Source: Kudoa neothunni (lineage: Eukaryota > Animalia > Cnidaria). Taken from it: a stretch of DNA of 64,000 nt. Location: positions 7,587,166-7,651,165 of the forward strand of contig OZ199839.1 of assembly GCA_964304625.1 (NCBI GenBank). Direction: 5' to 3'. The notes below the pieces were generated by a model, which was not told the origin of the DNA, did not search any database, and worked only from the letters and a program-made list of their open reading frames with translations. The position numbers and the translations under genes are program-made. Positions 1 to 27,470 of this stretch are shown here, one piece after another; within the stretch, counting starts at the first letter, position 1, and the number at the start of each line of letters is the position of its first letter.

Positions 1-1810
1 CTTCGCAGATGATCTTGTCCTTCTAGCCAACAACGACGGAGATATGGATACCCTTTTGAAGAAAACCGAAGATTTCCTATCCAAAACCTCCCTGACCGTC
101 AACCACTCCAAGTGCGCGAGCCTTAAAGTAAGTTACATTCAAGGTAGAAGATTCATCAACACCGTCTCCACAAACTCACCTACGCTTTTTGGAATCCACG
201 TGCCCCCGATGCAAAACTACTACAAATATCTTGGCACCCAATCCAACCTTCAATCCTTCAAGAACCTCCCACCTGCTTTTGACGACTTTATTATGAAATT
301 GACAAAAATCTCAAATTCTCCCCTTCTTCCCTTCCAAAAATTAAATCTCCTCAAGATATACGTATTCCCGAGCATCGACCACGTAATGAAGAATACCCTG
401 CTCCGAATTGAAGACCTTGCCAAGATTGATGCCCTCATCTTACGAAATGTTCGCCAATGGCTCAATCTTCCAAACTCCTCAACGAAGAACATCTTCTACA
501 TCCCCAACTGTGCTGGAGGACTTGGCTTGAAACAGCTTACGAAGGACTATGCCGCCTTACGGCTGGCCGCTGGTCTGAATCTGCTGAATTCCAAGGATGA
601 AACCATCCAACTTGTAGCAAGACAGTCCCTTCAAGAAATCTGTGCCAAACGAAGCAACCACTCCATGGATCCACTCACCTATCTTCATCTGGATGAAGAA
701 CCTTGCGTGTCTCGAGACATTCGAAGTCTTATGTCTTCAATGCGTTTGAACCGCAAATCAATCAAAGTGGACCTCCTCCAACCTTCTGAAGATCTAAACC
801 ACATGGAGATTGACGACGAAAGTCTCAATCCTCCCATTTTCCCTCCAAAAAATCCAACTTTCCAACCCACCCGCATCAAGAAGCTCCGTTGGCACCTACA
901 ATCCAACCATCTCCGTCTACTCAAGGCCCAAGTAGACCAAGGACGCTCCGCTGGCTGTTTTAGTCAACACGCTGAATCCAACTCGTGGACCCGAACCGGT
1001 AATATAAAAATTTCATCATTTAGGTTCGGTCTCATGGGTAGAATTAACGTGCTCCCGACAATGACAGTGCTACACCGTGCCCAATCTACGCTTGATACAC
1101 AATGCCGCCGATGTTCGTGCCAAGTGGAAACACTTGGACACATTCTGAATGGCTGTCCAAACAACAGAAACGAGATCATCCTTCGCCACAACTCAATTTT
1201 AGAATTCATCGCCTCCAAAATCAAGGTTGGAAAAAAGTATGAACTCCTGATCGACCGATTATTCCCCGATGGTGTCCTAATTGGCGACCGACGACCAGAC
1301 ATCCAACTTATCCACCGCCGCTCCAAGACGATAATCGTAGCTGACGTCTCCGTCTGCTATGAATCATCCCTACAACGCATGGACGAGGTAAGAGAGCACA
1401 AAATCCGGAAATACGCCGACGAGTTTGCTCTACTTGAACAAGCTGGCTGGAAGATTCTCCCAACTGCGCTCATCTTTGGATCCCTCGGCTCTCACCACCC
1501 GCTCAATTCCCAGGCTTACACCCTCCTCCACATTCAAAACCAGAAGAGAGTGAAAACCTTGATGAAAAACATCACAACCAATCTGATCGAAAGTTCCCAC
1601 ATGATTTGGAATAATCATGTGAGAACGACTAGATCCTAACAAAATTATCAAATCTTCCTACTTCATCGTGCATCTGCTGATTCCAATATCCATCCATCCA
1701 TCCATCAATATGTCCACCATTCCAATCTACACAAATCAACATTAGTTTAGTTAGTCTAGTCACTAAAAGTAACTTATTTATTAATCACGATAGCATTCGT
1801 TAGTTTTCGG
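1..1810 (+). mobile_element. Retrotransposon copy 1 (subtype A), 3' part only
   Basis: Appears identical to 5596-7405 (offset 5595); all ORF-track translations in this interval recur unchanged. Confidence 0.95.
2..1639 (+). CDS. C-terminal part of RT-RLE polyprotein (5' end outside the window)
   Basis: Starts at the FADD motif; contains the CRRC..HILNGC knuckle, RHN and the RPD..D..K endonuclease motifs; stop TAA at 1637-1639. Confidence 0.95.
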   Translation, partial: FADDLVLLANNDGDMDTLLKKTEDFLSKTSLTVNHSKCASLKVSYIQGRRFINTVSTNSPTLFGIHVPPMQNYYKYLGTQSNLQSFKNLPPAFDDFIMKLTKISNSPLLPFQKLNLLKIYVFPSIDHVMKNTLLRIEDLAKIDALILRNVRQWLNLPNSSTKNIFYIPNCAGGLGLKQLTKDYAALRLAAGLNLLNSKDETIQLVARQSLQEICAKRSNHSMDPLTYLHLDEEPCVSRDIRSLMSSMRLNRKSIKVDLLQPSEDLNHMEIDDESLNPPIFPPKNPTFQPTRIKKLRWHLQSNHLRLLKAQVDQGRSAGCFSQHAESNSWTRTGNIKISSFRFGLMGRINVLPTMTVLHRAQSTLDTQCRRCSCQVETLGHILNGCPNNRNEIILRHNSILEFIASKIKVGKKYELLIDRLFPDGVLIGDRRPDIQLIHRRSKTIIVADVSVCYESSLQRMDEVREHKIRKYADEFALLEQAGWKILPTALIFGSLGSHHPLNSQAYTLLHIQNQKRVKTLMKNITTNLIESSHMIWNNHVRTTRS

Positions 1811-1846
1811 AATCCATCGACCCGAGTTCGAATCTCGGTACGGCCA
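1811..1846 (+). tRNA. tRNA 3' half (positions 37-73), Gln-like; junction 1
   Basis: Parses as AA-TCCAT-CGAC-CCGAG-TTCGAAT-CTCGG-TACGGCC-A: anticodon-stem 3' strand, 4-nt variable loop, perfect T-arm/B box, acceptor 3' strand, discriminator. No 5' half precedes it. Confidence 0.85.
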
Positions 1847-1853
1847 CTCCCTC

Positions 1854-1865
1854 TTTTGTTTTTTT
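1854..1865 (+). terminator. Pol III-type oligo-T terminator behind the tRNA half
   Basis: TTTTGTTTTTTT begins 7 nt after the discriminator; T runs occur at the same place at all five junctions. Confidence 0.6.
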
Positions 1866-1933
1866 GTGGTATTGTCTTTTTTTGGGCTATTTTTTGGCGT
1901 TTTTAGCGGCTGCCTTTTATCAGGAAAGTTAAA

Positions 1934-1967
1934 GTAAGTTCTTTTATTGTTGTTGCTAACTTTTTAG
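1934..1967 (+). other. Putative 34-nt spliceosomal intron in the element 5' UTR
   Basis: GTAAGT..GCTAAC..TTTTTAG ending 20 nt before the ATG; counterparts at 7529-7562, 13163-13196, 18210-18243 and 26453-26492. Confidence 0.65.
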
Positions 1968-1987
1968 GTACATACGACGGTTGGAAG

Positions 1988-4900
1988 ATGGAGAACACAA
2001 CAGTTTTGTCGGAAAACTCCATTGACCATTTGAAAGACACGTGTCCCGAACTGACTCGAGTGATTTTGACCTACTTCCAGGCATGGGAGAAAGCCTCAAT
2101 CAAACGAAGAAGGAAACCTCAACTTTGTATTAAAGCCAACGAAATCGTAAAGATTTCAAAGCTCATTTTCAAGGCTAAAAGCGACATTTCCGTTTTATGT
2201 CGGAACCGACCGAAGTTGCCAACTACAGAAAAAACGCCGAATTTTGAAGATACGGATTTTGTGGATATCTCGATTGAAGCAAATGATGTATCTTATTCAG
2301 ATCGAGTCGCAATCCGAAAACTGCAGACAAATCTGTCCAGAAACAGACGAAGTCTCAATTTTCTGTACGATGAGTTTATGACTCTAGTACAGAAAGCTGT
2401 AGATGACGCCGAGTTTCCAGCAGAGTTGTTGAATGTTGATGGATCTGTTGACATTTCAGCGGACCTCAAATTCTTCCCGGTTTTCCCGAATCAGCCACTT
2501 TTAATTAATGAAGCGCATGTCACAGAAAAGCGTGTGATGAAGGCCACTGCTAATGGTGAAATTATTATTGATGATTCGCCCAATGTTGTTCTAAGTGTTG
2601 AGAATGTTGTTGTTGTTCCTACTTCTCCAGAAGTGGTGAACTCAGCAAATTCTGCGAATAATGAGACGACATTGGAGTTGCCCGCGCAGCCAATTTCGCC
2701 ATTGTCGAGTTCATTGCATAGTTTGGACGTTAATTCAGTTAATTCAGCTAAATCAGTCACTTTAACTAAATCTAATGTTAATTCTAAGTGCATTTCTAAA
2801 ATTAAAAAAGTAAAAAACCCCATTCCGCATCTTTCAACTCCCGAATATGACCATTCTTTGCATAATAATAGGATTTTTAACTTAAATAATCAAACTTGTA
2901 GTGAAGCTCCTATTTTAATCGACGAGAATGTTAATATTTCCCCTTCCTTAAATCAAAATTCACCCCAAAATCCATCAATTCCGGAAGAAAATGTTCAACC
3001 TAGCCTCATCGAACGGTCCAAAACCTTCTTTAGAGCGCCTAGTTTGTCGTTTAATTCCCCTTTGAAATCAGCTAATGTCTCCATTGGTGCGATGATGAAT
3101 AACTTTTTAAATGGCATTGTTGCCACTTTATCAAGTCCCGAATCATCTCCGAAACCCTCTCAACCACAAAATGAAGATGATGAAGACAACGAAGAATACT
3201 TTGACTCGTTCGAAGAGCCAATGCAGATCCCCCATCTGGAAATTGCACTTCCTCTCTTGGATGTGGAAATGATGGATGACGCGGTCGAGCTGCGAAAGCC
3301 TCAAAAACGACGACATCAAGATATCTCCCCCTCGTCTTCTCCATCTCCATCTTCTTCACCTTCCCCCTCAAAGCACCCTGACGATAACACCTCCAACGAC
3401 TCCTCCAGTGAAGACTGTGCCCCTAAAAAGGCCCATCTGGCACCCATTACCAATTCCCAACCTCCGCCTTTGTCCCTAATTGTCTCACCTGATGAAAACT
3501 TTTTATCCTCTCAGGATATTACCAAATTCATCCGAGACGTTAGGAGAAAGACGCGCAGAAGAACCAAGAAACAAATCACCCCTAGACCGATGAGAATAAC
3601 GAGATCTGCAGCAAAACTGCTCAGTTCTCAGTCTCAATCTCAAGAATCTCAACGTCCCCTTCCAACCCCGCCCAATCCACCTGCATTGGCACCCATCACT
3701 ACTGTGGAAGTCATCTCATCACCCTCGAGACCCAGGTCTCCAAATCCTCCAACTCCCAATCCAACCAAGAACGTGGCCTCTACACCGGAAGTTATCACCA
3801 ACTCTCCATCTACTGCAACTACTGCACCTACTGCACCTACTGACGTGGCAAACAAATCATTCTGCTTCGACCCAATCGACGAAAACAACCCACCAATCCT
3901 TGAATTCTCCAACATACCCATCCATAATGATGTTAATAGCAATATTAACAACGACGTCATTATCCTCGACACGGCCACCACTACTGAAGATCATATTGAA
4001 AATCGCATTGAAGAGACTCATGATGATATTGATATTGATGTAGATGTAGAAATGCCCCTCAACTTTGAAAATCAACCCTTGAGAGAAGCAACCACCCAAG
4101 ACGTCATGGAAGTGATGCGAGAACGAATTGGAAACAATTACGGACTCCCAGCTGCATCAGTTACTCCATCCAATCAACGTAACCCTTCTGACCCATCACC
4201 ATCAAACGTCCACACAACTGACGATATAATCGACGATAACGACGACGTTAATGCTGATCCACCCCAAGACGAGCAACCTCCTACCAACTTAAGTAAGTAC
4301 CAATTGAGGAAATTAGAGGAGGAAAAGAAGCTCAAAGCTGCAGCGTCGATGATGAAGCACTTGATCAATCATATAGGGTCCACTGCAACGTGTGACACCC
4401 TATATGCCCAATTTTTAGAGACCGCCATTGAGCATGCTAAAGAGCTCAAACTCCATCGAGTTCCCTTTACACGCCCCAATGACAATGACGCCGAAAATAG
4501 AGAAGCCAGCCCGTATGATGAGCACAATGTGGTGAGGAACAACAATCCGAATGACCCAAGCACTACTTTCGTACGAAGGATACAACGCCCCCTAACAAAG
4601 AGAGCCCACGAGAGGAGACTCCGTGGACTCTACCGCACCAATATGAAGCGTTGTTTCCACGAAGTAGTGAATGACCCGCCAAAATGGTGCACTGCCTCTG
4701 CTACACAAATAACAGAAGCACTCACCCCTAATTTGTCCAATCCTCCACCAATTCCAGAAGAAGCTCCACCTCAAAACGCCTCTCCAATCCAGCAAGATGA
4801 TGATAACGCTCCCATCCAATCCCAACGAGACATCTATGATTTCCAGCGGAACTACTCAGACATCCACATCTCCCCCGAAGACGTTCTTTGTGCGCTTGAA

Positions 4901-7234
4901 AAAGCAAACAAAGACACAGCAGTTGGAACCGATGGTATCCAAATGACATTTTGGAAACGTCTTCCACAAATAGAGTTTGTGCTAGCCCCGCTATTTAACT
5001 GCTTCATCCGTACAAGCACCATCCCTCAAAGTTGGTTGGAATCAAGACTGGTCTTAATTCCCAAATCGAAGGATGCAGACAGCACTGACCCCCTGAATTA
5101 CCGCCCGATTGCGATAACTCAAACAATCTACCGATTGTTCATGAGTTGTCTTAACAGAAAACTCAGACCCCTCATCCAACTGTCTCCATCTCAGAAAGGA
5201 TTTATACAAAGCGATGGCTGTGTCGAACACGCCTTCACCCTACAAGAAATCCTGGATGACTCTCGCCGACGCCAGTCAAAAATCAACGCTGTTTGGATCG
5301 ATATTCAAAAAGCGTTCGATTCGGTACCCCACAACTTTATCCTCCACCATCTACGTCAACAGAAAGTTCCTTCAAACATTGTCCAACTCATTGCCAATCT
5401 CTACGACAACAGTTACAGTCTGGTGACTGACAAAGACGGCAACAACTCCACAATCAACCCCAACGGCCGTGGCGTGAGGCAGGGATGCCCCCTGTCTCCG
5501 CTACTCTTCAATTTAGTGATTGACCCCCTTCTGGAAGATATTGCCAACAGTGGAATCGGCTACCCCCTCAGAGGACACAATATTGGTGCTCAATGCTTCG
5601 CAGATGATCTTGTCCTTCTAGCCAACAACGACGGAGATATGGATACCCTTTTGAAGAAAACCGAAGATTTCCTATCCAAAACCTCCCTGACCGTCAACCA
5701 CTCCAAGTGCGCGAGCCTTAAAGTAAGTTACATTCAAGGTAGAAGATTCATCAACACCGTCTCCACAAACTCACCTACGCTTTTTGGAATCCACGTGCCC
5801 CCGATGCAAAACTACTACAAATATCTTGGCACCCAATCCAACCTTCAATCCTTCAAGAACCTCCCACCTGCTTTTGACGACTTTATTATGAAATTGACAA
5901 AAATCTCAAATTCTCCCCTTCTTCCCTTCCAAAAATTAAATCTCCTCAAGATATACGTATTCCCGAGCATCGACCACGTAATGAAGAATACCCTGCTCCG
6001 AATTGAAGACCTTGCCAAGATTGATGCCCTCATCTTACGAAATGTTCGCCAATGGCTCAATCTTCCAAACTCCTCAACGAAGAACATCTTCTACATCCCC
6101 AACTGTGCTGGAGGACTTGGCTTGAAACAGCTTACGAAGGACTATGCCGCCTTACGGCTGGCCGCTGGTCTGAATCTGCTGAATTCCAAGGATGAAACCA
6201 TCCAACTTGTAGCAAGACAGTCCCTTCAAGAAATCTGTGCCAAACGAAGCAACCACTCCATGGATCCACTCACCTATCTTCATCTGGATGAAGAACCTTG
6301 CGTGTCTCGAGACATTCGAAGTCTTATGTCTTCAATGCGTTTGAACCGCAAATCAATCAAAGTGGACCTCCTCCAACCTTCTGAAGATCTAAACCACATG
6401 GAGATTGACGACGAAAGTCTCAATCCTCCCATTTTCCCTCCAAAAAATCCAACTTTCCAACCCACCCGCATCAAGAAGCTCCGTTGGCACCTACAATCCA
6501 ACCATCTCCGTCTACTCAAGGCCCAAGTAGACCAAGGACGCTCCGCTGGCTGTTTTAGTCAACACGCTGAATCCAACTCGTGGACCCGAACCGGTAATAT
6601 AAAAATTTCATCATTTAGGTTCGGTCTCATGGGTAGAATTAACGTGCTCCCGACAATGACAGTGCTACACCGTGCCCAATCTACGCTTGATACACAATGC
6701 CGCCGATGTTCGTGCCAAGTGGAAACACTTGGACACATTCTGAATGGCTGTCCAAACAACAGAAACGAGATCATCCTTCGCCACAACTCAATTTTAGAAT
6801 TCATCGCCTCCAAAATCAAGGTTGGAAAAAAGTATGAACTCCTGATCGACCGATTATTCCCCGATGGTGTCCTAATTGGCGACCGACGACCAGACATCCA
6901 ACTTATCCACCGCCGCTCCAAGACGATAATCGTAGCTGACGTCTCCGTCTGCTATGAATCATCCCTACAACGCATGGACGAGGTAAGAGAGCACAAAATC
7001 CGGAAATACGCCGACGAGTTTGCTCTACTTGAACAAGCTGGCTGGAAGATTCTCCCAACTGCGCTCATCTTTGGATCCCTCGGCTCTCACCACCCGCTCA
7101 ATTCCCAGGCTTACACCCTCCTCCACATTCAAAACCAGAAGAGAGTGAAAACCTTGATGAAAAACATCACAACCAATCTGATCGAAAGTTCCCACATGAT
7201 TTGGAATAATCATGTGAGAACGACTAGATCCTAA
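1988..7234 (+). CDS. Non-LTR retrotransposon polyprotein: N-terminal domain, low-complexity linker, RT, CCHC, restriction-like endonuclease (1748 aa)
   Basis: Motifs YRPIA, QKGF..DGCVEH, WIDIQKAFDSVPH, RGVRQGCPLSPLLFN, FADD, YKYLG, GGLG, C-x2-C..H-x4-C, RHN, RPD..D..K. Confidence 0.97.
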   Translation: MENTTVLSENSIDHLKDTCPELTRVILTYFQAWEKASIKRRRKPQLCIKANEIVKISKLIFKAKSDISVLCRNRPKLPTTEKTPNFEDTDFVDISIEANDVSYSDRVAIRKLQTNLSRNRRSLNFLYDEFMTLVQKAVDDAEFPAELLNVDGSVDISADLKFFPVFPNQPLLINEAHVTEKRVMKATANGEIIIDDSPNVVLSVENVVVVPTSPEVVNSANSANNETTLELPAQPISPLSSSLHSLDVNSVNSAKSVTLTKSNVNSKCISKIKKVKNPIPHLSTPEYDHSLHNNRIFNLNNQTCSEAPILIDENVNISPSLNQNSPQNPSIPEENVQPSLIERSKTFFRAPSLSFNSPLKSANVSIGAMMNNFLNGIVATLSSPESSPKPSQPQNEDDEDNEEYFDSFEEPMQIPHLEIALPLLDVEMMDDAVELRKPQKRRHQDISPSSSPSPSSSPSPSKHPDDNTSNDSSSEDCAPKKAHLAPITNSQPPPLSLIVSPDENFLSSQDITKFIRDVRRKTRRRTKKQITPRPMRITRSAAKLLSSQSQSQESQRPLPTPPNPPALAPITTVEVISSPSRPRSPNPPTPNPTKNVASTPEVITNSPSTATTAPTAPTDVANKSFCFDPIDENNPPILEFSNIPIHNDVNSNINNDVIILDTATTTEDHIENRIEETHDDIDIDVDVEMPLNFENQPLREATTQDVMEVMRERIGNNYGLPAASVTPSNQRNPSDPSPSNVHTTDDIIDDNDDVNADPPQDEQPPTNLSKYQLRKLEEEKKLKAAASMMKHLINHIGSTATCDTLYAQFLETAIEHAKELKLHRVPFTRPNDNDAENREASPYDEHNVVRNNNPNDPSTTFVRRIQRPLTKRAHERRLRGLYRTNMKRCFHEVVNDPPKWCTASATQITEALTPNLSNPPPIPEEAPPQNASPIQQDDDNAPIQSQRDIYDFQRNYSDIHISPEDVLCALEKANKDTAVGTDGIQMTFWKRLPQIEFVLAPLFNCFIRTSTIPQSWLESRLVLIPKSKDADSTDPLNYRPIAITQTIYRLFMSCLNRKLRPLIQLSPSQKGFIQSDGCVEHAFTLQEILDDSRRRQSKINAVWIDIQKAFDSVPHNFILHHLRQQKVPSNIVQLIANLYDNSYSLVTDKDGNNSTINPNGRGVRQGCPLSPLLFNLVIDPLLEDIANSGIGYPLRGHNIGAQCFADDLVLLANNDGDMDTLLKKTEDFLSKTSLTVNHSKCASLKVSYIQGRRFINTVSTNSPTLFGIHVPPMQNYYKYLGTQSNLQSFKNLPPAFDDFIMKLTKISNSPLLPFQKLNLLKIYVFPSIDHVMKNTLLRIEDLAKIDALILRNVRQWLNLPNSSTKNIFYIPNCAGGLGLKQLTKDYAALRLAAGLNLLNSKDETIQLVARQSLQEICAKRSNHSMDPLTYLHLDEEPCVSRDIRSLMSSMRLNRKSIKVDLLQPSEDLNHMEIDDESLNPPIFPPKNPTFQPTRIKKLRWHLQSNHLRLLKAQVDQGRSAGCFSQHAESNSWTRTGNIKISSFRFGLMGRINVLPTMTVLHRAQSTLDTQCRRCSCQVETLGHILNGCPNNRNEIILRHNSILEFIASKIKVGKKYELLIDRLFPDGVLIGDRRPDIQLIHRRSKTIIVADVSVCYESSLQRMDEVREHKIRKYADEFALLEQAGWKILPTALIFGSLGSHHPLNSQAYTLLHIQNQKRVKTLMKNITTNLIESSHMIWNNHVRTTRS

Positions 7235-7405
7235 CAAAATTATCAAATCTTCCTACTTCATCGTGCATCTGCTGATTCCAATATCCATCCATCCATCCAT
7301 CAATATGTCCACCATTCCAATCTACACAAATCAACATTAGTTTAGTTAGTCTAGTCACTAAAAGTAACTTATTTATTAATCACGATAGCATTCGTTAGTT
7401 TTCGG

Positions 7406-7441
7406 AATCCATCGACCCGAGTTCGAATCTCGGTACGGCCA
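7406..7441 (+). tRNA. tRNA 3' half, Gln-like; junction 2
   Basis: Identical to 1811-1846. Confidence 0.85.
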
Positions 7442-7582
7442 CTCCCTCTTTTGTTTTTTTGTGGTATTGTCTTTTTTTGGGCTATTTTTTGGCGTTTTTA
7501 GCGGCTGCCTTTTATCAGGAAAGTTAAAGTAAGTTCTTTTATTGTTGTTGCTAATTTTTTAGGTACATACGACGGTTGGAAG

Positions 7583-10500
7583 ATGGAGAATTCACCGAAT
7601 GTTAGTGAAAACTCCATTGACCATTTGAAAGACACGTGCCCCGAACTGTCGCGATCTGTTTTAATGTACTTCCAGGCCTGGCAGAAAGCTACAGTTAAAC
7701 GAAGACGTAAACCTCCTCTCTGCATTAAAGCCAACGAAATCGTTAAGATGGCAGAGCGCGTTTCCAAGGTCAAAAAGGACATTTCCGTTTTATGTCGAAT
7801 GCGTCCGAACCCATCAAAAACTCAAAAAAAGCCAAACTCTGAAGATAAGGACTTAATTGATGATTTGTTGAATCCGGAAGATGTGTCTTACTCAACGCAA
7901 GTGGCAATTCGAAAATTACAGACAAATCTTTCAAGAAACCGGCATAGTTTAGATATTCTCTATGATGAGTTTATGTCATTAATTCAGAAAGCAATTGATA
8001 CCCGAGAATTTCCTGCTGAATTGCTAAACGAAGATGGTTCTATTGATGTGTCGGAAGATCTTAAGTTTTTCCCGGTATTGCCAAAACAAACACTTTTACC
8101 TGCAGTAGAGACTATTCCGAAGAAGCTCGTCACAAAGACCATAGTTAATGGTGAGATTGTAATTTCTGAGTCGTCAGATATTACTCTTAATGACACCGGC
8201 AACAAATATAATACAGGAGCCTCCAGAGATAAGATCTCGACAAATATCAACATTTCCGCGACGCCATCAAAAATGCTCGCGCAGCCAATTTCACCATTAC
8301 CTAGCAAATCGCAGCCTCTTGTGCCAATTCCTCCCTTATCGGTTACTTCTGCCACTCCCAAGTCCACCACAACCTCTATTAAGGCAGCTAAAGCAAATAA
8401 ACCCTCTAAAGCACCTACTAATTTAGCTAATTCCAGTATTAAATCAACCTCCACGTCTAATTCTAACTCTAATCGTAAGAATTCCAAGACCTCTTTTAAC
8501 TATGACCATTCTTTGCTTAATAATAAGGCTTTTAACTCTATTATTAATGTCCCTAACCCATCTCCTGTTACTTTAATGCCCCCCATTTCACCGGAAGGTA
8601 AAACTACCCCTCAAGGGAATCAAGAAAATCATGAAAGTCAAGAAACTCAAGATATCCCAAATGAAGAGGCCCCTGTTGAAATATCAGTCTCTGTTGTTCC
8701 TCCAGTCTCTCCAGTTGCCCCGTCTTCTCCTCCCCCTAAATCATCAATTCTGGAAAGATCCAAATCTTTCTTCCTAACCAAACCGCAATCTAACCAGAAT
8801 CCCGACCACAACATTTCCATAGGCCAAATGATGAAAAATTTTCTTCATGGAGTAGCTACCACTATTTCCAGTCCAGAGCCTACACCAATTCCTGAGGACA
8901 ACTTCAATATGACCCTTAAAGTCAACATTGAAGACATCAACTGCAGGACCAACAATGAAGATGCGGAATTTTTTGACTCTTTAGAAGAATTCCCCCTGGT
9001 TTTTGATGATACGACGCCCCTAAGTGACCAAAGTGACCTATTGGATACCAGTGAAACCAACGAGAGCAACTACCTGCGAAATCCCGTAAAAAGGAATCGC
9101 CAGGCTCTGATTAGTGCCCTACCCAACGCCACTGATTCCAATAATAATAGTGAGAGCAACGATGTCATCTGTCTTGATGATTTAAACCAACTTGAGTTCC
9201 CGCTCAAGAAGGAATTACTATCTCCTATTAATTCACCTTCTCCACATTCTTTAAATTCCTTAAATTCCTTAAATTCTTTAAATTCCTCCAATTTAACTCC
9301 CCCCAACCACTCTGTTTCTAACCCCTTGTTGAAACGTATTTCTATCTCTGATATAGCCCCCGCTATATTAACCACTCCTCCACCTCTATCCCCGATTGTT
9401 TCCCCCAATGAGAACTTTCTGTCTTCCCAGGATGTGAATAATTTTATCAGGGACATTAAGAAACAATCCTCCTCCAAACGTCGCTCCAAACCATCATCTG
9501 CTCCTCAGTCCAGATCTCCACAACCTTCTGCTCATCCTTCCATCTCGGAAACAAATGAAAGTATCGACGCCAATTCGAATGACATTATTGTCATTGAGAA
9601 ATCTCCCGAAAAATCATTTGTCTTCGAACCTATTGATGAGAACAACGCCCCAGATCTGGACTTTTCCATACACAACGCCTCAACCGTCGCTCCCGATGCT
9701 GTAGAAGACCCTACAACTGGTGATATTGAAATGTTGTCTCCAGAAAAACAACCGCAACCCAAGTATCGAGAGGTGTCCACTCAAGATGTCATGGTTGTGA
9801 TGCGCCAAGAAATTGGTGGTAACTATGGCATCCGACCTCAAACACCCCCAACCCAATCTCCACCTCCACCTTCAATTCGAGAACATCAGACGGTCCAGCC
9901 AACTCAACTAACCCCTGAAGAGACTGCGCCAGCTGATGATACGGAAGTTCCCCCAAGCGACCAACCACAGCCCAATCTCACCAAATACCAACGCCGGAAA
10001 TTAGAAGAGGAGAAGAAACTTAAAGCAGCTTCGTCCATGATGAAACACCTCATCAATCACATTGGATCGACTGAATCCTGTGACTTCCTCTATGCTAAAT
10101 TCCTGGAGTCAGCCATCGAACATGCAAAAGAACTCCATATGCATAGGGTTCCTTTCACACGTCCCAACGATAACGACGCTGAAAACAGACCCGCCAACCC
10201 GTATGATGAATCTAACGTGGTCCCCAACAACAACCCCGCCGACCCAAGCACCACCTTTGTCAGAAGAATCCAACGTCCGCTCACCAGAAGAGCGAATGAA
10301 AGAAGACTCCGTGGCCTCTACCGCACAAACATGAAACGCTGCTATAACGAAGTTGTGCAAGACCCTCCAAAATGGTGTACCGCATCTGCTAACCGAATTG
10401 CGGATGCGCTCACACTCTCAATGCCTGCCCCGCCACAAATTCCTGACGATGCCACCGATGAAGCCATCCCAATATCCCCAACTGATGAAAACACTCAACG

Positions 10501-12907: not shown

Positions 12908-13040
12908 TCTTCTCTCCACTCAACGCTCAATCCTACGTTCAACTGCTGATTCCAACCTCCACCTAACATCCATGAAAATCTCCACTAGTCCTCAATCCAA
13001 TTAGCTTATATAAACACGGTAGCGATTATGTAGTTATTAG

Positions 13041-13076
13041 AATCCATCGACCCGAGTTCGAATCTCGGTACGGCCA
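13041..13076 (+). tRNA. tRNA 3' half, Gln-like; junction 3
   Basis: Identical 36-mer, preceded by a different 3' UTR. Confidence 0.85.
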
Positions 13077-18012: not shown

Positions 18013-18086
18013 TCCACTATCTATCCTCGAAATTCCACATATGCATTAACTATTAAATAACACACATGCGCATTTCCTTGTTTTAA

Positions 18087-18122: not shown

Positions 18123-21100
18123 CTTCCATTTTACATTTTTGGAACTATTGTCTTTTTTTGGGCTATTTTTTGGCGTTTTTAGCGGCTGCCTTTTATCAGG
18201 AAAGTTAAAGTAAGTTCTTTTATTGTTGTTGCTAATTTTTTAGGTACATACGACGGTTGGAAGATGGAGAATTCACCGAATGTTAGTGAAAACTCCATTG
18301 ACCAATTGAAAGACACGTGTCCCGAACTGTCGCGATCTGTTTTAGTGTACTTCCAGGCCTGGCAGAAAGCTACAGTTAAACGAAGACGTAAACCTCCTCT
18401 CTGTATAAAGGCGAATGAAATCGTAAAGATGGCAGAGCGCTTTAAGAGGTCTAAAGATGAACTTTCCGTTTTATGTCGAGATCGACTGAACCTGCCAAAT
18501 TCCGCGAAATCTCAGAATTCAGAAGATACAGAATTTGTGGATATTTCGATTGAAGCAAACGATGTATCTTATTCAGATCGTGTCGCAATCCGGAAACTGC
18601 AGACAAATCTGTCCAGGAACCGCCGAAGTCTCAACATTTTGTATGATGAGTTTATGACTCTAGTACAGAATGCTGTTGATGATGGTGAGTTTCCGGAAGC
18701 TTTGAACTATAATGACGGTTCTGTTGATATATCAACGGATCTGAAATTATTCTCAGTGCTTGCAGGACAACCCGATCTTATTCCAGCGCCATCGGAAGAT
18801 AGACAGCGCATCGAAGAATGCATCCCACCACGCCAAACTTGAAATACAAGATTGCCAAAGTCTTCTCTAAGTGACAGAAGCGTTGTAAAAGATGTGATTG
18901 TCATTGACGAGGAGAACAAAGCAAACTTGCCACCAAATTAATCGACTAGTCACCATTGATGTGCGCGCAGCCAATGCTGACGCCATCTTCGCCGAATATG
19001 AATGCTAGGGCGGTTTTTGAGGATACGCAACCCCCAATTGATAAGCCCTACGATTTGTTTGGAAGAGTTTTTAATAATATTAATAATCCTAGCGCCGTCG
19101 AATTCGAACAAGCGCCCTCCATTGCAGAAAATGCAATTCGTTCAGTGCTAATTTAACAGTCCGAGGTGATTTTGTCTAATGAGGATCTCGAAGCAGACAA
19201 AATCACCGACAATGCTTCCTCACAATCAGCAGATGATATTCTCAGCAAGACTTTGGAGATCATTGTGGAAAATTTGGAAGAGAGCCCCCAAAAATCCCGC
19301 GCCAAATCGTTTTTCATGGGACCCAACGCAAAGCCAATAAGTAAGATATTCTGCGTTGGTTCCGATGATAATGATGATGGAATTACTGCTCCTACCTCTT
19401 CTCAACCGACTACGAGTTCTCCATCTGTTTCCCGCCCCCATCTTCGTCCCAGGAAGCGTAATCGCATAGAAATGTGCGATGAAACTTCCTCGCTTCCACC
19501 ATTGGCACCCATCACTGACCGTCCAACCAAACGACCGAGATTGGGACCCAACTTCCTTGCGTCCCTTTCTTCACATCCATCTACTGCTTCAACGCCTCCC
19601 CGGTACAATTTTGAGAACTTTAGATGCTCCTACAATAGCTTTGACGCAACAACTCGCCGACTTTATTGAGGAGCAAACAAACAAAATCCCAACTTTCCTA
19701 AGTCAAGATAGATCAGTTAGATCGTTCTTCTGGCGAATTGAGAGAGAAATCTTTCAATTTCGAACCAGAAAACGCTCCTCCTGACTTGAACTTTTCCAAC
19801 ATCGACCCAACACAAGTAAGCTTTCATGTGGCAGATGATACAGCCGAAAATGATGATACTCTCCGTCCACCGCTCCCAACATTGAAGACGACCGAGACAT
19901 TGATGCCATCGCGGAAATTATCACTCAAGGTCAATCCGATCAGCAAGCGAGTGATAATATCCCTCCAAACTCTCCAGCACTGGTTTCTGCTCAAGAAGTC
20001 CTTGACTTTTTGAGGGAGTATAATGGTCGTCAGGCCCCAGTTACTGAGGTTGTGCAAGAAAACCCCATAGATGAGATTCCCTCACAACAACCAGCGTCAT
20101 CGATTGCCGCTGCTGATGTTGATCCTGCTCAACAGCAACAACGTCCTCTTTCAAAATATCAAGAAAGAAAGAACAAAGAGGACGCAATGTTAAAAGCAGC
20201 GGCCAACATGTTGAAGCTTGTTGTGAATCACAACACCAACAACATGGCATGTAACGAGCTGTATGAAAAATTCCTTTCTGCAGCAACCGAACATGCGAAG
20301 CTTCTGAATCTGCACTACGGTCCGCTTGAAAAAAGCGCAGTACAAGGAAATTCAGAAGCTGTGGAAGCACCCCAACCTACTGGCCAACCCAATAAACCTC
20401 CTTTCTCTTACAAGAAGAGCAAATGAGAAGCGCCTGATGGGCTTGTACCGCACTAATATGAAGAAGCGCTATAACGAAGTGGTACAAGACCCTCCGATGT
20501 GGTGTAAAGCTACCCCTACGCAAATTGTAGAAGCTCTCACCCTTCCTCCACCACAAGACATTCCACTTCCAGAATATGTGGAAACGGAAGAAAGAAGACC
20601 CCATGAAGATCCTCTATCCCAACCTGGTGCCTACAACGTGAATGAACCGTACAGCTTCTACTTGAATTACAGTGATCTGTATATCTCGCCGGAAGATGTA
20701 CTCTTCACCTTAGAGAGGGCCGAGAAAGATACCGCATGTGAGACAGACAGCATCCATATGCAATTTTAGAAACGTCTACACCAAATCGAATTTGTTCTGG
20801 CTCCTCTCTTTAATTACATCCTTCGTACGAATACCATCCCAAAAAGTTAACTCGAATCAAGACTGGTGCTAATACCCAATTCCAAAGACGCAGCGACTGA
20901 TAACCCCACTAACTACCGCCCTATCTCAATCACTCAAACAGTCTACCGATTGTTTATGAGTAGCATGAATCGAAAACTCCGTCAGATGATGAAGTTATCT
21001 CCTGCTCAGAAAGGTTTCATTCAAAGTGATGATGTCGAATATGCAGTCACTTTACATGAAATCCCGGACGACTCAAGACGCCACCTTTCCAAAATCAATG

Positions 21101-22997
21101 CTGTCTGGATAGACATCCAAAATCATTTGATTCTGTCCCACACAATCGCATCATCCACCAACTCCGTCGCCACCATGTCCCGACCAATATAGTCAACCTC
21201 ATTTCCATCTGCATGAAGGCTCCTTCAACATCGCAACAGACAAAGAAGGAAACACCTCCAATATCCCACCTCAACGGCCGAGGCGTGAGACAAGGCTGTC
21301 CCCTGTCTCCCCTTCTTGAGGAGATCGTTAACAGTGGTATTGGTTACCCACTCCGTGGGCAGAACATTGGTGTTCAGTACTTTGCTGATGATTTGGTCCT
21401 TCTAGCGAAGACACCTACAGATATGGGTTCCCTCTTAAGAACTGCTGAAGACTCTTTACGAAAACTTCTTTGAGTGTCAACCATTCCAAATGTGCGAGTC
21501 TCAAAGTTAGCTATTTGTATAGCAGAAGAGTCATCAATAATCAATTGTCCAACGCAATCCAACTTTTTGGTACCCACATTCCTCCAATGAAGAACCATTA
21601 CAAATATCTTGGAACTTAATCTAATTTACAATCTTTAAAGATCTCCCACCTGCTCTCGATGATTTTATACAAAAATTGAAGAAAATTTCCAACTCACCAC
21701 TTTTTCCATTCCAAAAGCTCAACATTCTCAAGATATAACACCAATGTTAGACCACGTCATGAAGAATACTATCCTCCGTATTGAAGATCTGGCCAAATTG
21801 ATGCCCTAATTTTACGAAAAGTTCGTCAGTGGCTCAATTTACCCAACTCCTGCACGAAGCATATATTCTATCTACCAAATTCTGCTGGTGGACTCGGTTT
21901 GAGACAACTAACCAAGGATTATGCTGCCTTGAGATTAGCCGCTGGGCTCAATCTGTTGAACTCTACCGATGAACCCATCCAAAAAGTAGCCCGTCTGTCT
22001 CTGGAAGAAATTTGCAACAAGAGGACGAAGAACTCCATGGATCCTCTAACATACCTCCACCTGGATGAAGAACACTGCGTTTCTCGCGACATTAAAAGTC
22101 TTTTTTCTTCGATGCGCTTGAATCGCAAATCTATCAAAGTCGACTTATGCCAACCTTCCGATGATCCTAATCACATAGACATTGATGATGAATCCCTTAA
22201 TTCTCCAATTTTTCCACCCAAGAACCCAACCTTCCGTCCAACTCGTATCAAGAAACTACGATAGCATCTTCAAGCATCTCATCTCAACCTCCTCAAGAAT
22301 CAAGTCGACCAAGGAAGATCTGCTGGCTGCTTCAGTCAACACACCACCTCCAACTCTTGGACCATAACCGGGAACATCAAAGTAAGCTCCTACCGGTTTG
22401 GCCTAATGGAAAGGATAAATGTATTGCCAACGAAGACAGTCCTCCACAAAGCCCAATCCTCGCTTGACACACAGTGTAGACGCTGTTCGTGTCAAGTTGA
22501 AACTTTGGGACACATCTTAAATGGCTGCCCTAACAGCAAAAACCATATCATACTCCGCCACAACGATGTCTTGGAAACCATTGCTTCCAAAATCAAGGTT
22601 GGGAAGAAATATGAGTTAAAGATAGACAAACTCTTCCCTGATAGCATCCTAATTGGTGACCGCCGCCCGGACATACAGCTAATCCATCAAAGGTCAAAAA
22701 GAATCATTGTAGCTGATGTCTCCATTTGCTACGAGTCTTCTCTTGACCGAATGGACCAAGTTCGCAGCCACAAGTTAGAGAAGTATGCCCACGAGTTTGC
22801 CCTCCTAGAGCAATATGGTTGGAAAGTACTCCCAACAGCTCTCATCTACGGATCGTTAGGATCCCACCACCACCTCAACAATCAAGCATATACCCTCCTA
22901 CACATCCAAAATGAACGTAAGATTAAAACTTATGAAAACCATCACCACGTCACTGATTGAGAAGTCTCACATGATTATTCCAAATCATGTGAGAACG
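18087..22997 (+). mobile_element. Retrotransposon copy 5, mosaic, multiply disrupted, 3' UTR deleted
   Basis: ATG at 18264; more than 10 ORF fragments homologous to copies 2-4; ends at ...CATGTGAGAACG fused to copy 6. Confidence 0.93.
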
Positions 22998-25900
22998 CAA
23001 TGGTAATAATTTTGGACTCCCCGCAGCATCATCGACATCTTCGAATCCACTCAATAACTCTGATCCTTCTCCATCCAACTTGCATACCCGATCCAACGAA
23101 GATAACAACGACGATGGAAATGCCGACACAAATGAACAAGATCGTCTCCCCTCCAACCTGACTAAATATCAACGGCGCAAAATGGAAAAAGAGAAACTCA
23201 AGGCGGCTGAAGCGATGATGAAGCACCTAATCAACCATATGGGCTCTTCCGAATCCTGCGAAACCCTGTATTCTAACTTCCTGTCCGCGGCCACAGAACA
23301 CGCAATGGAGCTGAAAATTCACCGTGCTCCCTACACCCGTCCTAACTATAATGATGCGGAAAACAGAGAGGGCAACCCTTATGAAGAGCACAATATCGTC
23401 CGAAACAACAACCCTGCTGATCCGAGCACAACATTTATCAGAAGGATTCAACGCCCCCTAACAAAGAGAGCCCATGAGAGGAGACTCCGTGGACTCTACC
23501 GCACTAACATGAAGCGTTGTTTCCACGAAATAGTGAATGACCCGCCGAGATGGTGCACTGCACCTGCTGACAAAATAGCAGATGTTTTGACCTCAATCTC
23601 ATCTTCCGTTCCTCTACCGACCATCGATGATTCTACTCCTCTACATCCCTTCGCAGCCCAAATTCAATCTGCACTTCCAACTACACCTGAAGATGCGGAT
23701 ATTTACAATTTTCAAAGGAATTATTCCGACCTTCACATAGCCCCCGAAGACGTCCTGTTTGCTCTAGAGAAAGCCAACAAAGACACCGCGGTGGGGACAG
23801 ACGGCATCCAGATGACTTTCTGGAAACGTCTCCCGCAAATTGCATACGTTCTTGGCCCACTCTTCAATTATAATATCCGCTCTAGCATCATTCCTGCAAG
23901 CTGGCTCGAATCAAGATTGGTCTTGATTCCAAAAACTAAAGACGCCGACAGCAATGATCCCCTCAACTACCGTCCGATTGCAATCACTCAAACAGTCTAC
24001 CGACTGTTTATGAGCTGTTTGAATCGCAAACTGCGCTGCGCCCATTGATCAAACTGTCCCCGGCTCAAAAAGGGTTTCTACAAAGCGATGGCTGTGTTGA
24101 ACACGCCTTCACCCTACAGGAGGCCCTTGACGATTTCCGACGCAAACAGTCAAAAATCAACGCTGTCTGGATTGACATCCAGAAAGCGTTTGATTCAGTT
24201 CCACACAACCTCATCATCCATCACCTCAAGAAACAACATATCCCTTCCAACATTACCCAGCTCATCTCCAACCTCTACAACAACAGCTACAACCTAATAA
24301 CTGATAAAGACGGCAACAACTCCAGAATCAATCCTAATGGCCGTGGTGTGAGACAGGGGTACCCCCTGTCTCCACTCTTATTCAATATAGTTATCGACCC
24401 GCTACTGGCTAAGATCAACGAAAGTGACATTGGGTATCCTATCCTCGGTCAAAGAATAGGTGCTCAATGTTTTGCAGACGACCTGGTCCTCTTGACAGAT
24501 GGTGAGGAAGATATGAACCGGCTACTGAAGATACGGAAGATTTCCTTACAACCGCTCAACTTGCGTCAACCACGCCAAATGCGCCTCGCTTAAGGTAAGT
24601 TATTTGTATAGCAGGCGCATTATCAATGAAGATTCATCCCCTTCGCCGAAACTCTATGGAACCGCCACATCACCCATTCAAGACCTACAAGTACTTAGAG
24701 ACCTGCTCCAACCTCCAATCCTTCAAGGATCTACCGCCCTGCTTCAAGAAATTTCAAGAAAATCTCAAGAAACTTTCCAACTCGCCACTGCTACCCTTTC
24801 AGAAGATCAATCTGCTGAAGATCTATATGTTCCCAGCCCTCGACTTCGTGATGAAGAATTAAGTATGACGCCCTCATCCTAAGAAATATCAGAAAATGGC
24901 TCAACTTACCCAACTCTTCGACCACCCCGCCTATTCTACACTCCAAACTGCTCCGGTGGACTCGGCCTTCGCCAGTTGACCAAAGACTATGCTGCCTTAA
25001 GGCTGGCCTCTGGTCTTAATGTGCTCAATTCGAAGGACGAGGCCATCCAGAAGATAGCCCGCCTCTCCTTAGTGAAGAGAGTGGACAACGATCTAAATCC
25101 CAAATGGATCCACTAAGCTACGTCCACGAAGAAACGGAACCCATCATCGCCCGCTATATCCAAAGTCTCCTTTCGTCCATCAGATTAAATCGGAAATCCA
25201 TCAACATATCCCTGTGCCAAAACTCTGACGATAAAGTACACTTGGACATCGATTCAGACTCCTTGCATCCTCCCCTAAATCCATCGAAGAATCCTACCTT
25301 CACCCCTGTTAAGACAAGACACCATTGTTATTAATATCACTATATGTATATCTACAAAGCTGTTTATATATGGAATTTAGGATCCAGAATGTTCTAGAAA
25401 CATCTAAGCCGATGATAGGTTGTTATAGAAGCTTTCAGTGTATTCTATGTTAAACTAGAACCATCTGGAAGCCCTAACAACCCCAACCCGTGTCAAGCAG
25501 CTCCACTGGCACCTTCAATCCATCCACATGAAGGAGTGGACCGATCAACTCGACCAGGGAAGATCAGTCAAATGTTTTGCAGATACGAAGGAAGCGAATG
25601 CATGGACCCGAACTAGAAATATAAAAGTAAGTGCCTAAAGGTTCGGGCTCATGGGAAGAATCAACGTCCTGCCTACCAACACCGTCCCCCACCGTGCCCA
25701 CTCCAACCTGGACACTCAATGCCGACGTTGCGCTCCTGCCAAGTCGAGACCTTAGGTCACGTCTTGAACGGATGTCAACGCGGAAAAGAGTTGATAATCA
25801 AGCGACACGATGCTGTCCTCGACCAAATATTCAACTATAAGAAGAAATAAGGTGAGGCCTACAAATTACGTGTTAATTATAGGTTCCCCTCAATTTCTTC

Positions 25901-26326
25901 ATCTCGTCGACTCGACATCCAAATCCTGCACCAACGATCAAAAACCTAGTCGTGGTTGATATTTTCGTTTGTTATGAATCGAGCTTGGACCGTTTGAACC
26001 AGGTGAGATCCCATAAAATTCGGAAATATGAGCCCGAGTTTGAGCAGCTCCGGAATCTTGGTTACCACGTTCTACCCGCCGCTTTAATCTATGACTCCTT
26101 GGGAAGCCACCTCCACCGAAATGGGGAAGCGTATACACTTCTTCAACTGTCTTCTGAGCGCAAGCGATGAAGCCTTTTGAAGAATGTTACGTCTACCTTG
26201 ACCGAGTGGTCGCACAAAATCTGGAACCACCACATTCGAACTGAAGCATGAAAATCCAATTTCCAACTACACCCCACAACAAAAAATTATTTTTAGATTA
26301 AAAAACAGCTTTACCTGAGTTATTTA
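22998..26326 (+). mobile_element. Retrotransposon copy 6, 5'-deleted, mosaic (A-like then C-like), degenerate
   Basis: Starts at the homologue of copy 2 position ~4126; RT and RLE fragments; ORF-end homologue TGA at 26249-26251. Confidence 0.92.
25307..25479. mobile_element. 173-bp insertion, probable solo LTR
   Basis: TGTTA...TAACA termini; 5-bp TSD ACCCC at 25302-25306 and 25480-25484; absent from the homologous site of copy 4. Confidence 0.8.
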
Positions 26327-26362
26327 AATCCATTAACTCGAGTTCGGGTCTCGGTACGGCCA
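26327..26362 (+). tRNA. Degenerate tRNA 3' half at the last junction
   Basis: AATCCATTAACTCGAGTTCGGGTCTCGGTACGGCCA; 5 substitutions relative to consensus, B box damaged. Confidence 0.75.
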
Positions 26363-27470
26363 CATTGCTTTTTTCTTTTTTGAGCGTATTGTCTATTTAA
26401 TTTATTGGTTTTTTGGCGTTTTTAGCGGCTGGATTTTATTCTGAAAGACCAAGTAAATTATTTTATTGTTGTTGTTGTTGTTATCTTTCTAGGTACACCC
26501 AATCGTTGGAAGATGGAGAATTCGGCAGTTTTGTGTGAAAACTCCATTGATCATTTAAAAGACACGTGCCCCCCTGACGCGAGATGTTTTAATCTATTTC
26601 CAGGCCTGGCAGAAAGCTTCAGTTAAAAGATGTAAACCTTCGCTCTGTATAAAGGAAAACGAAATCGTGAAGATGTCAGAGCGCGTTGAGTGTCAAAGGC
26701 GAACTTTCCATTTATGTCCGAACCGGCCGAAGTTGCTAATTCCTACGAAATCACAGAACTCAGAAGATACGGAGTTTGTGGAAATTCCAGCTGCAGTAGA
26801 AGATGTATCTTATTCAGATAGGGTTGCTATTCGAAAACTGCAGACAAATCTGTCCAGACACCGACGAAGTCTCAACATTTTGTACGACGAGTTCATGACT
26901 CATCTACAGAAAGCTGTAGATGACGCTGAGTTTCCTGTTGAATTAGTGAGCAATGATGGATCTGTCGATATATTGGCAGATCTAAAATTCTTTCCAGTTT
27001 TGCCAAACCAACCAATTCTTAATGATGGTCAATCAAAGAAAAGGCGAGTTATGGAGGCCACCGCAAGTGATGAAATCATACCAAAAGAAGCGCCCAATGT
27101 TGCTCAAAGATTGGAAGATGTTGTTCCTACTTTTAAGGAAGTGGAGAGCGCAACAAAAATTACGAATAATGAGGCGCCATTAAAAACAGACGTGCCCCAA
27201 CCCATTCCACCGTCTGTGCATAATTTCCGTAGTCCAAGGTTATCTTTACCCATTAATAATTAACTATTAACTACTTCTTTACTCAATCTTGCCCAAATTC
27301 TGTTAATTATGATCATTTCTCACATAATACCGATTTTGATTTTAATCAATTCTAACTTAACGTCTCCCATTAAACCAAATTCACATCCAAACTCAACCTC
27401 CGACGTGGAAATAGATAATATTCAGACTCCAGCTCCGATCCCGATCAAAAAAAGATCCAAATTATTCTTC
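26327..27470 (+). mobile_element. Retrotransposon copy 7, 5' fragment only
   Basis: 5' UTR, ATG at 26513 and a frameshifted N-terminal domain (DVSYSDRVAIRKLQTNLSR); no RT follows. Confidence 0.9.

Follow-up and report, generated by a model that had tools for sequence, protein, structure and literature searches.

R2-like retrotransposons residing in tRNA genes with a complete tRNA gene at the array head

A tandem array behind tRNA-Gln(UUG)

We analyzed a 64,000-nucleotide stretch (the window) of the AT-rich, 40 Mb genome of Kudoa neothunni (assembly GCA_964304625.1, contig OZ199839.1, here C2, positions 7,587,166 to 7,651,165, forward strand), an assembly with three large contigs. The first 27,470 nucleotides are occupied by a head-to-tail array of retrotransposon units, labeled A and C–G (Table 1), and an RPS9 gene as well as an NCU-G1-like gene are also present in the window. 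Most units are separated by a 36-nucleotide sequence, for which no matches are expected by chance, and this sequence is joined at the same A by differing 3′ UTR ends, as the first-pass annotation had described. T-runs and a leader follow each copy. The array ends near position 27470, where the G+C content falls from about 45% to about 27%, and as a 200-N assembly gap lies just before the first base of the window, the number of units is a lower bound.

Table 1 Features of the array within the window (window coordinates).
Position	Strand	Feature	Properties
1..1810	+	3′ portion of a type-A unit starting beyond the assembly gap	ORF fragment (44-1639) and 3′ UTR ending ..TTCGG; 100% identical to unit 1 positions 3786-5595
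1811..1846	+	tRNA-Gln(UUG) 3′ part, positions 37-73	Exact 36-mer; identical to the 3′ part of the head tRNA
1847..1987	+	Trailer with two T-runs (Pol III terminator-like), then leader	Conserved GTAAGTT...CTAAC...TTTTTAG signal in the leader at 1934-1967
1988..7234	+	Uninterrupted type-A ORF, 1748 aa	RT at nt 5060-5740, CCHC at 6698-6754, RLE PD..D..K at 6884-7009; Pfam RVT_1 E 9e-34
7235..7405	+	Type-A 3′ UTR	Ends ..TTTTCGG
7406..7441	+	tRNA-Gln 3′ part	Exact 36-mer
7442..13040	+	Type-C unit	Leader almost identical to type A; uninterrupted ORF 7583-12907 (1774 aa); 3′ UTR ends ..ATTAG; dN/dS against A 0.04 in the RT-RLE region
13041..13076	+	tRNA-Gln 3′ part	Exact 36-mer
13077..18086	+	Type-D unit	ORF split over two frames (13154-15406 and 15412-17880); 3′ UTR ends ..TTTTAA
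18087..18122	+	tRNA-Gln 3′ part variant (TACGACC)	1 mismatch; followed by a B-like trailer
18123..22986	+	Type-E unit, degenerate	Several stop codons; 3′ end missing
22987..26326	+	5′-truncated degenerate unit F	3′ UTR ends ..ATTTA
26327..26362	+	Degenerate tRNA-Gln 3′ part	5 mismatches
26363..27470	+	Remnant G, leader plus N-terminal ORF part of an old unit	AT-rich host DNA follows

ARAGORN did not detect any tRNA in the window, so that no tRNA 5′ half is visible there. A genome-wide search yielded 8 occurrences of the 36-nucleotide sequence, all within this single array, which starts 18.8 kb upstream of the window and is headed by a complete tRNA-Gln(TTG) gene (C2:7568381-7568454). The 36-mer corresponds exactly to the part of this gene following the anticodon, confirming the initial parse as tRNA positions 37–73 and placing the junction between G36 and A37. 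In contrast to the initial prediction of a 5′ acceptor strand starting with GGCCGTA, the head gene carries GGTTGTA, which therefore pairs with the element-side TACGGCC through two G.U pairs. The 5′ half of the head tRNA is unique in the genome.

An RLE retrotransposon clade associated with many tRNA genes

The encoded proteins comprise an R2-like reverse transcriptase (RT) followed by a CCHC motif and a PD..D..K restriction-like endonuclease (RLE). Pfam searches detected RVT_1 in six lineages with E values of 1e-33 to 1e-37, but neither an AP-endonuclease (Exo_endo_phos) nor RNase H, integrase, zinc-finger or Myb domains. The type-A protein matched the R2 structures 9nl3/9dou with E of about 1e-76, where residues 1499–1731 align to the R2 endonuclease part. 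The Cx2C..H..C, R(R/K)PD, acidic and K..KY motifs are conserved in 11 lineage sequences, although the Phe copy has a K at the second acidic position. The conserved amino-terminal 170 residues are predicted to be helical; the predicted fold (mean pLDDT 63.5) showed three long helices and Foldseek against the PDB gave nothing below E 1, although a divergent DNA-binding motif could still have been missed. Likewise, we did not obtain any Rfam hit in the array, providing no indication of an HDV-like ribozyme as in R2. The units do not contain LTRs or terminal repeats other than the tRNA part.

Related lineages (43–52% protein identity) showed the same layout behind eight other tRNA genes, namely Lys-UUU, Trp, Ser-AGA, Thr-UGU, Asn, Phe, Cys and Gln-CUG. 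In all 9 loci for which both junctions were read, a complete tRNA gene on the same strand heads the array and the element 3′ UTR joins the 3′ part of this tRNA at position 37–40. Family sequence lies directly downstream of 5 more identified tRNAs and of two that remain unidentified (C1:4258474 and C1:5766073, C1 denoting another contig of the assembly), amounting to at least 14 different identified tRNA genes. Every locus with readable context lies behind a tRNA gene and we found no family copy abutting unrelated sequence; three to four degenerate RT loci (C1:3000792, C2:7764702/7772992 and C2:1815662) were not included. Remarkably, six of six tested target tRNAs have a single complete copy, the array head, whereas the Gly-GCC control recovered both of its copies. 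A related contig from another sample exhibited the same layout with a different tRNA-Gln 3′ part.

In a quick RT tree, built without Repbase references, the tRNA-associated lineages form a separate clade (SH-aLRT 100) outside the bona fide R2 group, with the Triops, aphid and spider R2 sequences lying elsewhere. The nearest relatives found by sequence are Utopia-like elements, where the proteins P0003, P0004 and P0008 are about 30% identical over RT-RLE and form other branches. Their contigs carry U2 genes around the elements in the same arrangement, with an intact small-RNA gene at the head and its 3′ part (from about nt 39) after each element, followed by identical downstream flanks. Intact U2 genes upstream of Phytophthora Utopia copies and a low-copy target have been reported previously (Kojima and Jurka 2015, PMC4640811), where this layout was interpreted as deletion of the 5′ fragment and not as restoration of the gene. 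Unlike Utopia, the clade described here occupies tRNA genes, with at least 14 different targets in one genome.

Array dynamics and the origin of the tRNA 3′ part

The arrays are mostly polar, with intact, near-identical units near the head and decayed or deleted remnants at the tail, although this polarity is not strict, as unit A4 has 2 differences in 1652 nt while the deeper unit A5 has none. Several lineages keep long uninterrupted ORFs under strong purifying selection. Lineages A, B and C show dS above 2 and dN/dS of about 0.04 in the RT-RLE region, indicating that they diverged while functional rather than by decay in place. We therefore consider it unlikely that a single ancient insertion per tRNA gene was followed only by unequal crossing-over and gene conversion. 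Identical tandem units and mosaic 5′ ends do show that recombination acts in the arrays, identical units could arise by unequal crossing-over rather than by new insertions, and an assembly gap lies inside the array; however, two phylogenetically distant lineages share the Lys-UUU array, and the occupation of at least 14 identified tRNA genes by lineages of one clade requires repeated targeted insertion.

We infer that the endonuclease nicks the bottom strand on the 3′ side of the anticodon loop (36/37 for Gln) and that this nick primes reverse transcription (TPRT), fixing the 3′ junction. We further infer, as the weakest step with the RNA 5′ end being unknown, that the integrated unit begins with the tRNA 3′ part plus a T-run terminator carried by the element. 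The host 5′ half and the element-borne 3′ half would then again make a complete, terminated tRNA gene, which stays functional and is the only full target, so that later insertions land at the head and push older copies distally. This interpretation, which agrees with the proposal of the first-pass annotation and passed the three tests set there, is in our view somewhat more likely than not.

In the Gln array the tRNA-part variant goes with the downstream trailer in 8 of 8 units, where GGCC is combined with the A-like trailer in 6 units and AACC or GACC with the B-like trailer in 2 units. Unit B, carrying AACC, lies between A units that are 100% identical over 5595 bp. In the Lys and Asn arrays the trailer differs by lineage from the first bases after the tRNA end and is linked to the body downstream. 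In Ser, Thr and Cys only 53–60 nt separate the tRNA end from the start codon, leaving little room for a promoter downstream of the tRNA part. Nevertheless, the informative tRNA-part variants come from one array only, and the 5′ ends of the units are mosaics: unit C has an A-identical 183-nt start despite saturated ORF divergence, unit D is A-identical for about 95 nt, and unit E is B-like and then C-like. This points to copying from a resident unit or gene conversion and weakens the linkage argument. In addition, no mechanism for the precise 5′ join is shown, and the excess of G.U pairs in acceptor stems of occupied tRNAs, as a possible signal of chimeric tRNAs, was not significant (15/105 against 8/84).

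An alternative that is not excluded, though we regard it as the less probable one, is a staggered cut, with the bottom strand cleaved at 36/37–39/40 and the top strand at the 3′ end of the tRNA gene. The tRNA 3′ part would then be duplicated as a 34–46 bp target-site duplication and the element RNA would start with the T-rich trailer, devoid of tRNA sequence. This model gives the same architecture and is in line with the 20-bp duplications of reptile Utopia families (PMC4640811), the identical tRNA parts within the Lys, Trp, Cys and Phe arrays, and the A-identical starts of units C and D, which look like copying from a resident head. On the other hand, unit B carries TACAACC although both neighboring, otherwise 100% identical units carry TACGGCC, the variants co-occur with the B-like trailer in two separate units, and a second precise cut exactly at the gene end would be needed in every lineage, whatever the length of the variable arm. 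A longer duplication is excluded, as terminal orphan parts at the Phe, Asn and Gln-CUG loci carry a different trailer.

Insertion just downstream of an untouched tRNA gene (cut at 73/74), by an element carrying the tRNA 3′ part at its own 3′ end, for example from read-through, for pairing with the target to prime reverse transcription, appears improbable. It would yield the same architecture without ever disrupting the gene, and read-through target sequence may help priming in other site-specific elements. However, the tRNA-part variant would then be linked to the upstream unit, whereas units A1 and A2, 100% identical over 5595 bp, are followed by different variants, GGCC and AACC. Orphan parts would also be targets, predicting no polarity, in contrast to the mostly polar arrays.

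Relation to other site-specific elements

tRNA gene-specific RLE families have been reported before, so that the first-pass suggestion of a possibly undescribed behavior needs tempering. The NeSL-related NeSL-1_TV (tRNA-Pro), LIN15_SM (tRNA-Arg) and LIN25_SM (tRNA-Glu), from a parabasalid and a planarian, are RLE non-LTR elements whose 3′ ends abut tRNA gene sequence (PMC4640811, section 10 and supplementary file 5). The planarian tRNA-Arg junctions appear to lie 5′ of the anticodon stem, so the downstream fragment still contains the anticodon, although our reading of this machine-read supplementary text is uncertain. Target restoration, arrays headed by intact genes or a radiation over many tRNAs are not described for these families. 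Full-text literature searches, not extending to Repbase or to the RLE elements listed by Fell et al. 2025 (Nature), yielded no description of the present family or of target restoration by a retrotransposon.

With R2 the elements share a single ORF and a site-specific 3′ junction, which in R2 is set by TPRT. However, R2 inserts in the 28S rRNA gene and disrupts its multicopy target, whereas here a complete single-copy gene remains. In purely functional terms the arrangement resembles phage and integrative-element att sites in tRNA genes, where the incoming element carries a copy of the tRNA 3′ part and the gene stays whole. Those elements use a tyrosine or serine recombinase acting on DNA, whereas here an RT plus an RLE are inferred to work by TPRT in a eukaryote, and integration is not reversible by excision.

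Site-specific retrotransposons are thought to survive by hiding in multicopy genes, where a disrupted copy costs little. As the targets tested here are single-copy, essential tRNA genes, the element can persist only if each insertion leaves a working gene, a different survival strategy closer to homing elements and phage att sites. If the 3′ half is element-borne, part of the host translation machinery is continually rewritten by a parasite, and host 5′ halves and element 3′ halves would have to co-evolve. The same layout in U2-specific Utopia arrays suggests a general property of this group that has been read differently until now. A clade that has re-targeted itself to many distinct short sequences while keeping precise, non-disruptive insertion is also of interest for understanding, and possibly borrowing, RLE target recognition.

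More speculatively, and in our view unlikely though not excluded, the sole genes for several essential tRNAs (Trp, Phe, Asn, Cys, Gln-UUG, Lys-UUU) would be chimeras whose 3′ halves and terminators are written by retrotransposons, with target choice resting at least partly on pairing between the tRNA segment carried in the element RNA and the target DNA. A lineage could then switch to a new tRNA by capturing a new 3′ part, rendering this a naturally re-targetable site-specific retrotransposon that homes into single-copy essential genes. The absence of a known DNA-binding domain in the Pfam searches and the number of targets within one clade leave room for this possibility. Furthermore, the amino-terminal regions follow the RT tree rather than the target, and while two distant lineages share tRNA-Lys(UUU), nearer relatives use Lys, Ser and Thr.

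Organization of the tRNA-Gln array

To verify the first-pass annotation, which had described four different 3' UTR ends joining the same tRNA 3' part at the same nucleotide, we searched the window for the 36-base tRNA 3' part and identified the copies listed in the table below, whereas no matches are expected by chance. The bases preceding these copies are the ends of different 3' UTRs, as described, and each copy is followed by T-runs and a leader. ARAGORN did not detect a tRNA in the window. The first 27.5 kb exhibited a G+C content of about 45%, compared to about 27% for the rest of the window. Together, these data confirm the initial observation.

We next extended the analysis to the 40.26 Mb assembly (G000), comprising four contigs, where the window corresponds to positions 7587166-7651165 of contig C2. 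In the whole genome the 36-mer occurs 8 times at up to 2 mismatches, and all 8 copies lie in one array. The first of these is the 3' part of a complete tRNA-Gln(TTG) gene, which is preceded by AT-rich host DNA. The junction lies between G36 and A37, although it could equally be 35/36, as the preceding UTR also ends in G. The 37-base 5' half is unique in the genome at up to 3 mismatches, and BLAST with the whole tRNA yielded only this gene, the partial copies of the array and a tRNA-Gln(CTG) gene. The 5' acceptor strand, GGTTGTA, pairs with the common 3' strand TACGGCC through two G.U pairs, whereas one unit carries the perfect complement TACAACC and another carries TACGACC.

Mapping of the array showed that units A1 and A2 are 100% identical over 5595 bp, followed by unit B, which has an uninterrupted ORF of about 57% protein identity to A, and by unit A4, which is interrupted by a 200-N assembly gap. 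As this gap lies within a type-A unit just before window base 1, the number of type-A units is a lower bound and the order across the gap is not certain. The window then comprises the tail of an A unit, A5 (identical to A1), C (uninterrupted ORF), D (ORF split over two frames), E (many stops), F (5'-truncated) and G (a remnant with leader and N-terminal ORF part). Intact copies lie near the head and decayed copies at the tail, although the order is not strictly monotonic, as A4 has 2 differences in 1652 nt, while the deeper A5 has none. Within the host part of the window we identified two gene exons, encoding ribosomal protein S9 (S4/S9 N-terminal domain) and an NCU-G1-like lysosomal protein, where the NCU-G1-like piece found no homologue in the large protein search.

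Locations of the features described in the text. Window, window positions; C1 and C2, contigs of the assembly G000; L numbers, sequence stretches.
Feature	Location	Remark
tRNA-Gln(TTG) gene at the array head	C2:7568381-7568454	complete
Array of the 8 copies of the 36-mer	C2:7568418 to 7605287	
36-base tRNA 3' part	window 1811	exact
36-base tRNA 3' part	window 7406	exact
36-base tRNA 3' part	window 13041	exact
36-base tRNA 3' part	window 18087	one mismatch
36-base tRNA 3' part	window 26327	five mismatches
Assembly gap	C2:7586966-7587165 (L021:6966-7165)	200 N
ORF of 1748 aa	window 1988-7234	RVT_1 domain
Conserved leader signal	window 1934-1967 (also 7529-7562 and 18210-18243)	Gln-group leaders
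Start of host DNA	window near 27470	
Host gene exons, ribosomal protein S9 and NCU-G1-like	window 51983-52438 and 56457-57206	
Lys-TTT array	C2:1003001-1043000 (L022-L025)	two lineages
Unidentified tRNAs	C1:4258474 and C1:5766073	each just upstream of an RT copy
Examples of 3' UTR ends with candidate hairpin	L024:1799-1868(-), L028:8329-8398, L030:4052-4121(-), L033:4355-4424	last 30 nt of the 3' UTRs
Unit-boundary deletion variant	L040:3540-3590	sample ERZ795007, NODE_36
Utopia-like elements in U2 snRNA arrays	L062:300-8770, L061:8120-8440, L063:2650-2960	metagenome-assembly contigs of the nearest outgroup proteins

Encoded proteins and distribution over tRNA genes

The 1748-aa ORF matches solved R2 proteins at E about 1e-76 in two stretches, the second of which covers the CCHC motif and the PD..D..K endonuclease. 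These motifs are conserved in 11 lineage sequences. Pfam detected no AP-endonuclease, integrase, zinc-finger or Myb domain in six full-length ORFs. All lineages share an N-terminal domain of about 170 aa, which is predicted to form three long helices and yielded no fold match, and which is separated from the RT by a long variable region. Besides the coding region, the Gln-group leaders contain an invariant GTAAGTT, followed by TTGCTAAC and TTTTTAG|G just before the start codon, resembling a 34-nt mini-intron or a trans-splice acceptor with a branch site. This signal is conserved in all units and in the contig from sample ERZ795007, whereas the other lineages share CTGAATCTAACGATG at the start codon. 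At the opposite end, by visual inspection, the 3' UTRs of several lineages end with a 4-bp hairpin whose stem changes while keeping its pairing (GATC/GATC, GGCC/GGCC, AGCT/AGCT, ATCT/AGAT), with a TAC(G/A) or TCGT loop, followed by TTGTAT(A/T)ATTA directly before the tRNA part, a candidate RT recognition element.

A protein search of the genome yielded related copies at about ten other loci, with 43-52% identity. At nine loci ARAGORN identified a complete tRNA on the element strand immediately upstream of the first element, namely Gln-TTG, Lys-TTT, Trp-CCA, Ser-AGA, Thr-TGT, Asn-GTT, Phe-GAA, Cys-GCA and Gln-CTG. In each case the 3' UTR of the element is followed by the 3' part of that same tRNA, starting at position 37-40. 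We then took the 38 best tRNA hits in the genome and examined 20 more of them. Val-AAC, Val-CAC and Ile-AAT have family sequence downstream by tblastn, and Lys-CTT and Thr-AGT have RT hits just downstream, as do the two unidentified tRNAs on C1, whereas Arg-CCT showed a long open frame and raised G+C downstream, which is only suggestive. In contrast, Val-TAC, Gly-GCC (two copies), Ser-GCT, Ala-TGC, His, Pro-TGG, Arg-TCG, Ser-CGA and Tyr showed no sign of an element within 2.5 kb. Leaving aside three to four degenerate loci, no family copy with readable context lies away from a tRNA gene.

To assess the copy number of the targets, we searched the genome by BLAST with the complete tRNAs and found exactly one full-length copy, the array head, for each of Lys-TTT, Trp-CCA, Phe-GAA, Asn-GTT and Cys-GCA, as well as for Gln-TTG, whereas the Gly-GCC control recovered its two known copies. 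Although this search could miss a copy that has diverged by more than about 20%, the only genes for tRNA-Trp, Phe, Asn and Cys in this assembly sit at the heads of retrotransposon arrays. The genome seems to hold a minimal tRNA gene set, which is unusual for an animal genome, as the 38 best hits are almost all different isoacceptors, although only 63 of about 2556 rough candidates were scored. An element that destroyed such a target would be lethal, so the intact head gene is a necessity.

Origin of the tRNA 3' part

Three models result in the same layout: the unit carries the tRNA 3' part at its 5' end, with the nick at 36/37; staggered nicks duplicate the tRNA part; or the element inserts after the tRNA and carries the part at its own 3' end. 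A duplication longer than the tRNA part is excluded, as the terminal orphan parts at the Phe, Asn and Gln-CTG loci are followed by different trailers. In the Lys array two trailer types differ from the first bases after the tRNA, each linked with the body downstream in three of three units, and the two Asn units show the same kind of lineage-specific trailer. In the Gln array the tRNA-part variant goes with the downstream trailer type in 8 of 8 units. Unit B, with TACAACC and its own trailer and leader, lies between A units that are identical over 5.6 kb, and its two differences therefore cannot be decay in place. They also cannot belong to the upstream A2 unit, arguing against a part carried at the 3' end of the element, and they are not what a copy of the then-resident head would give, arguing against duplication by staggered nicks. 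Furthermore, in Ser, Thr and Cys only 53-60 nt separate the tRNA end from the start codon, indicating that transcripts probably start upstream of, and include, the tRNA part.

The 5' ends of the units are, however, mosaics. Unit C shares 183 nt with A at two differences, although the A and C ORFs have dS above 2, unit D is A-identical for about 95 nt, and unit E is B-like and then C-like. Some exchange process, which we could not resolve, acts on the first 60-190 nt. While it is also unknown how the 5' join becomes precise, selection would in any case remove imprecise events at a single-copy essential gene. Taken together, the interpretation of the first-pass annotation, a nick just 3' of the anticodon with the new copy supplying the 3' half and terminator, is supported in the tests it had set and is the best current reading, where we consider the element-borne 3' half only somewhat more likely than not.

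Evolution and relation to known elements

The dN/dS between A, B and C is about 0.04 in the RT-RLE region, with saturated dS, indicating that the co-resident lineages are old and were kept functional. In a tree of 40 RT-RLE sequences, all tRNA-linked elements plus two proteins from sample ERZ795007 form one clade, with an SH-aLRT of 100 and a long stem, which lies apart from bona fide R2. The Lys-TTT array holds two distant lineages, one near Trp and Phe and the other near Ser and Thr, which alternate in the array and whose 3' junctions differ by one base (tRNA position 39 against 40), the junction following the upstream element type. N-terminal similarity follows the RT tree, not the target. 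Among 5.8 billion proteins only the two ERZ795007 proteins are close (82% and 66% identity), whereas the next best hit is 31%. One ERZ795007 contig shows the same layout with a different tRNA-Gln 3' part and the same junction. In the ERZ795007 contig NODE_36 (L040) the stop codon of an element is joined directly to the distal part of the leader of the next unit, a deletion variant of the unit boundary lacking the 3' UTR, tRNA part and trailer.

NeSL-related RLE families specific for tRNA-Pro, tRNA-Arg and tRNA-Glu genes were reported previously by Kojima and Jurka 2015 (PMC4640811), who also noted that Phytophthora Utopia copies have intact U2 genes upstream rather than 5' fragments, read this as deletion on integration, and stressed the puzzle of a low-copy target. 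In the literature examined, we did not find a description of a clade spread over many tRNA genes in one genome, of insertion on the 3' side of the anticodon loop, of single-copy essential targets, or of the reading that the element restores its target. The nearest outgroup proteins in our search (P0003, P0004 and P0008) sit in U2 arrays. One of these arrays, on contig L062, shows an intact U2 gene at the head and, after each element, a U2 3' part with an identical downstream flank, and the architecture is thus shared with Utopia.
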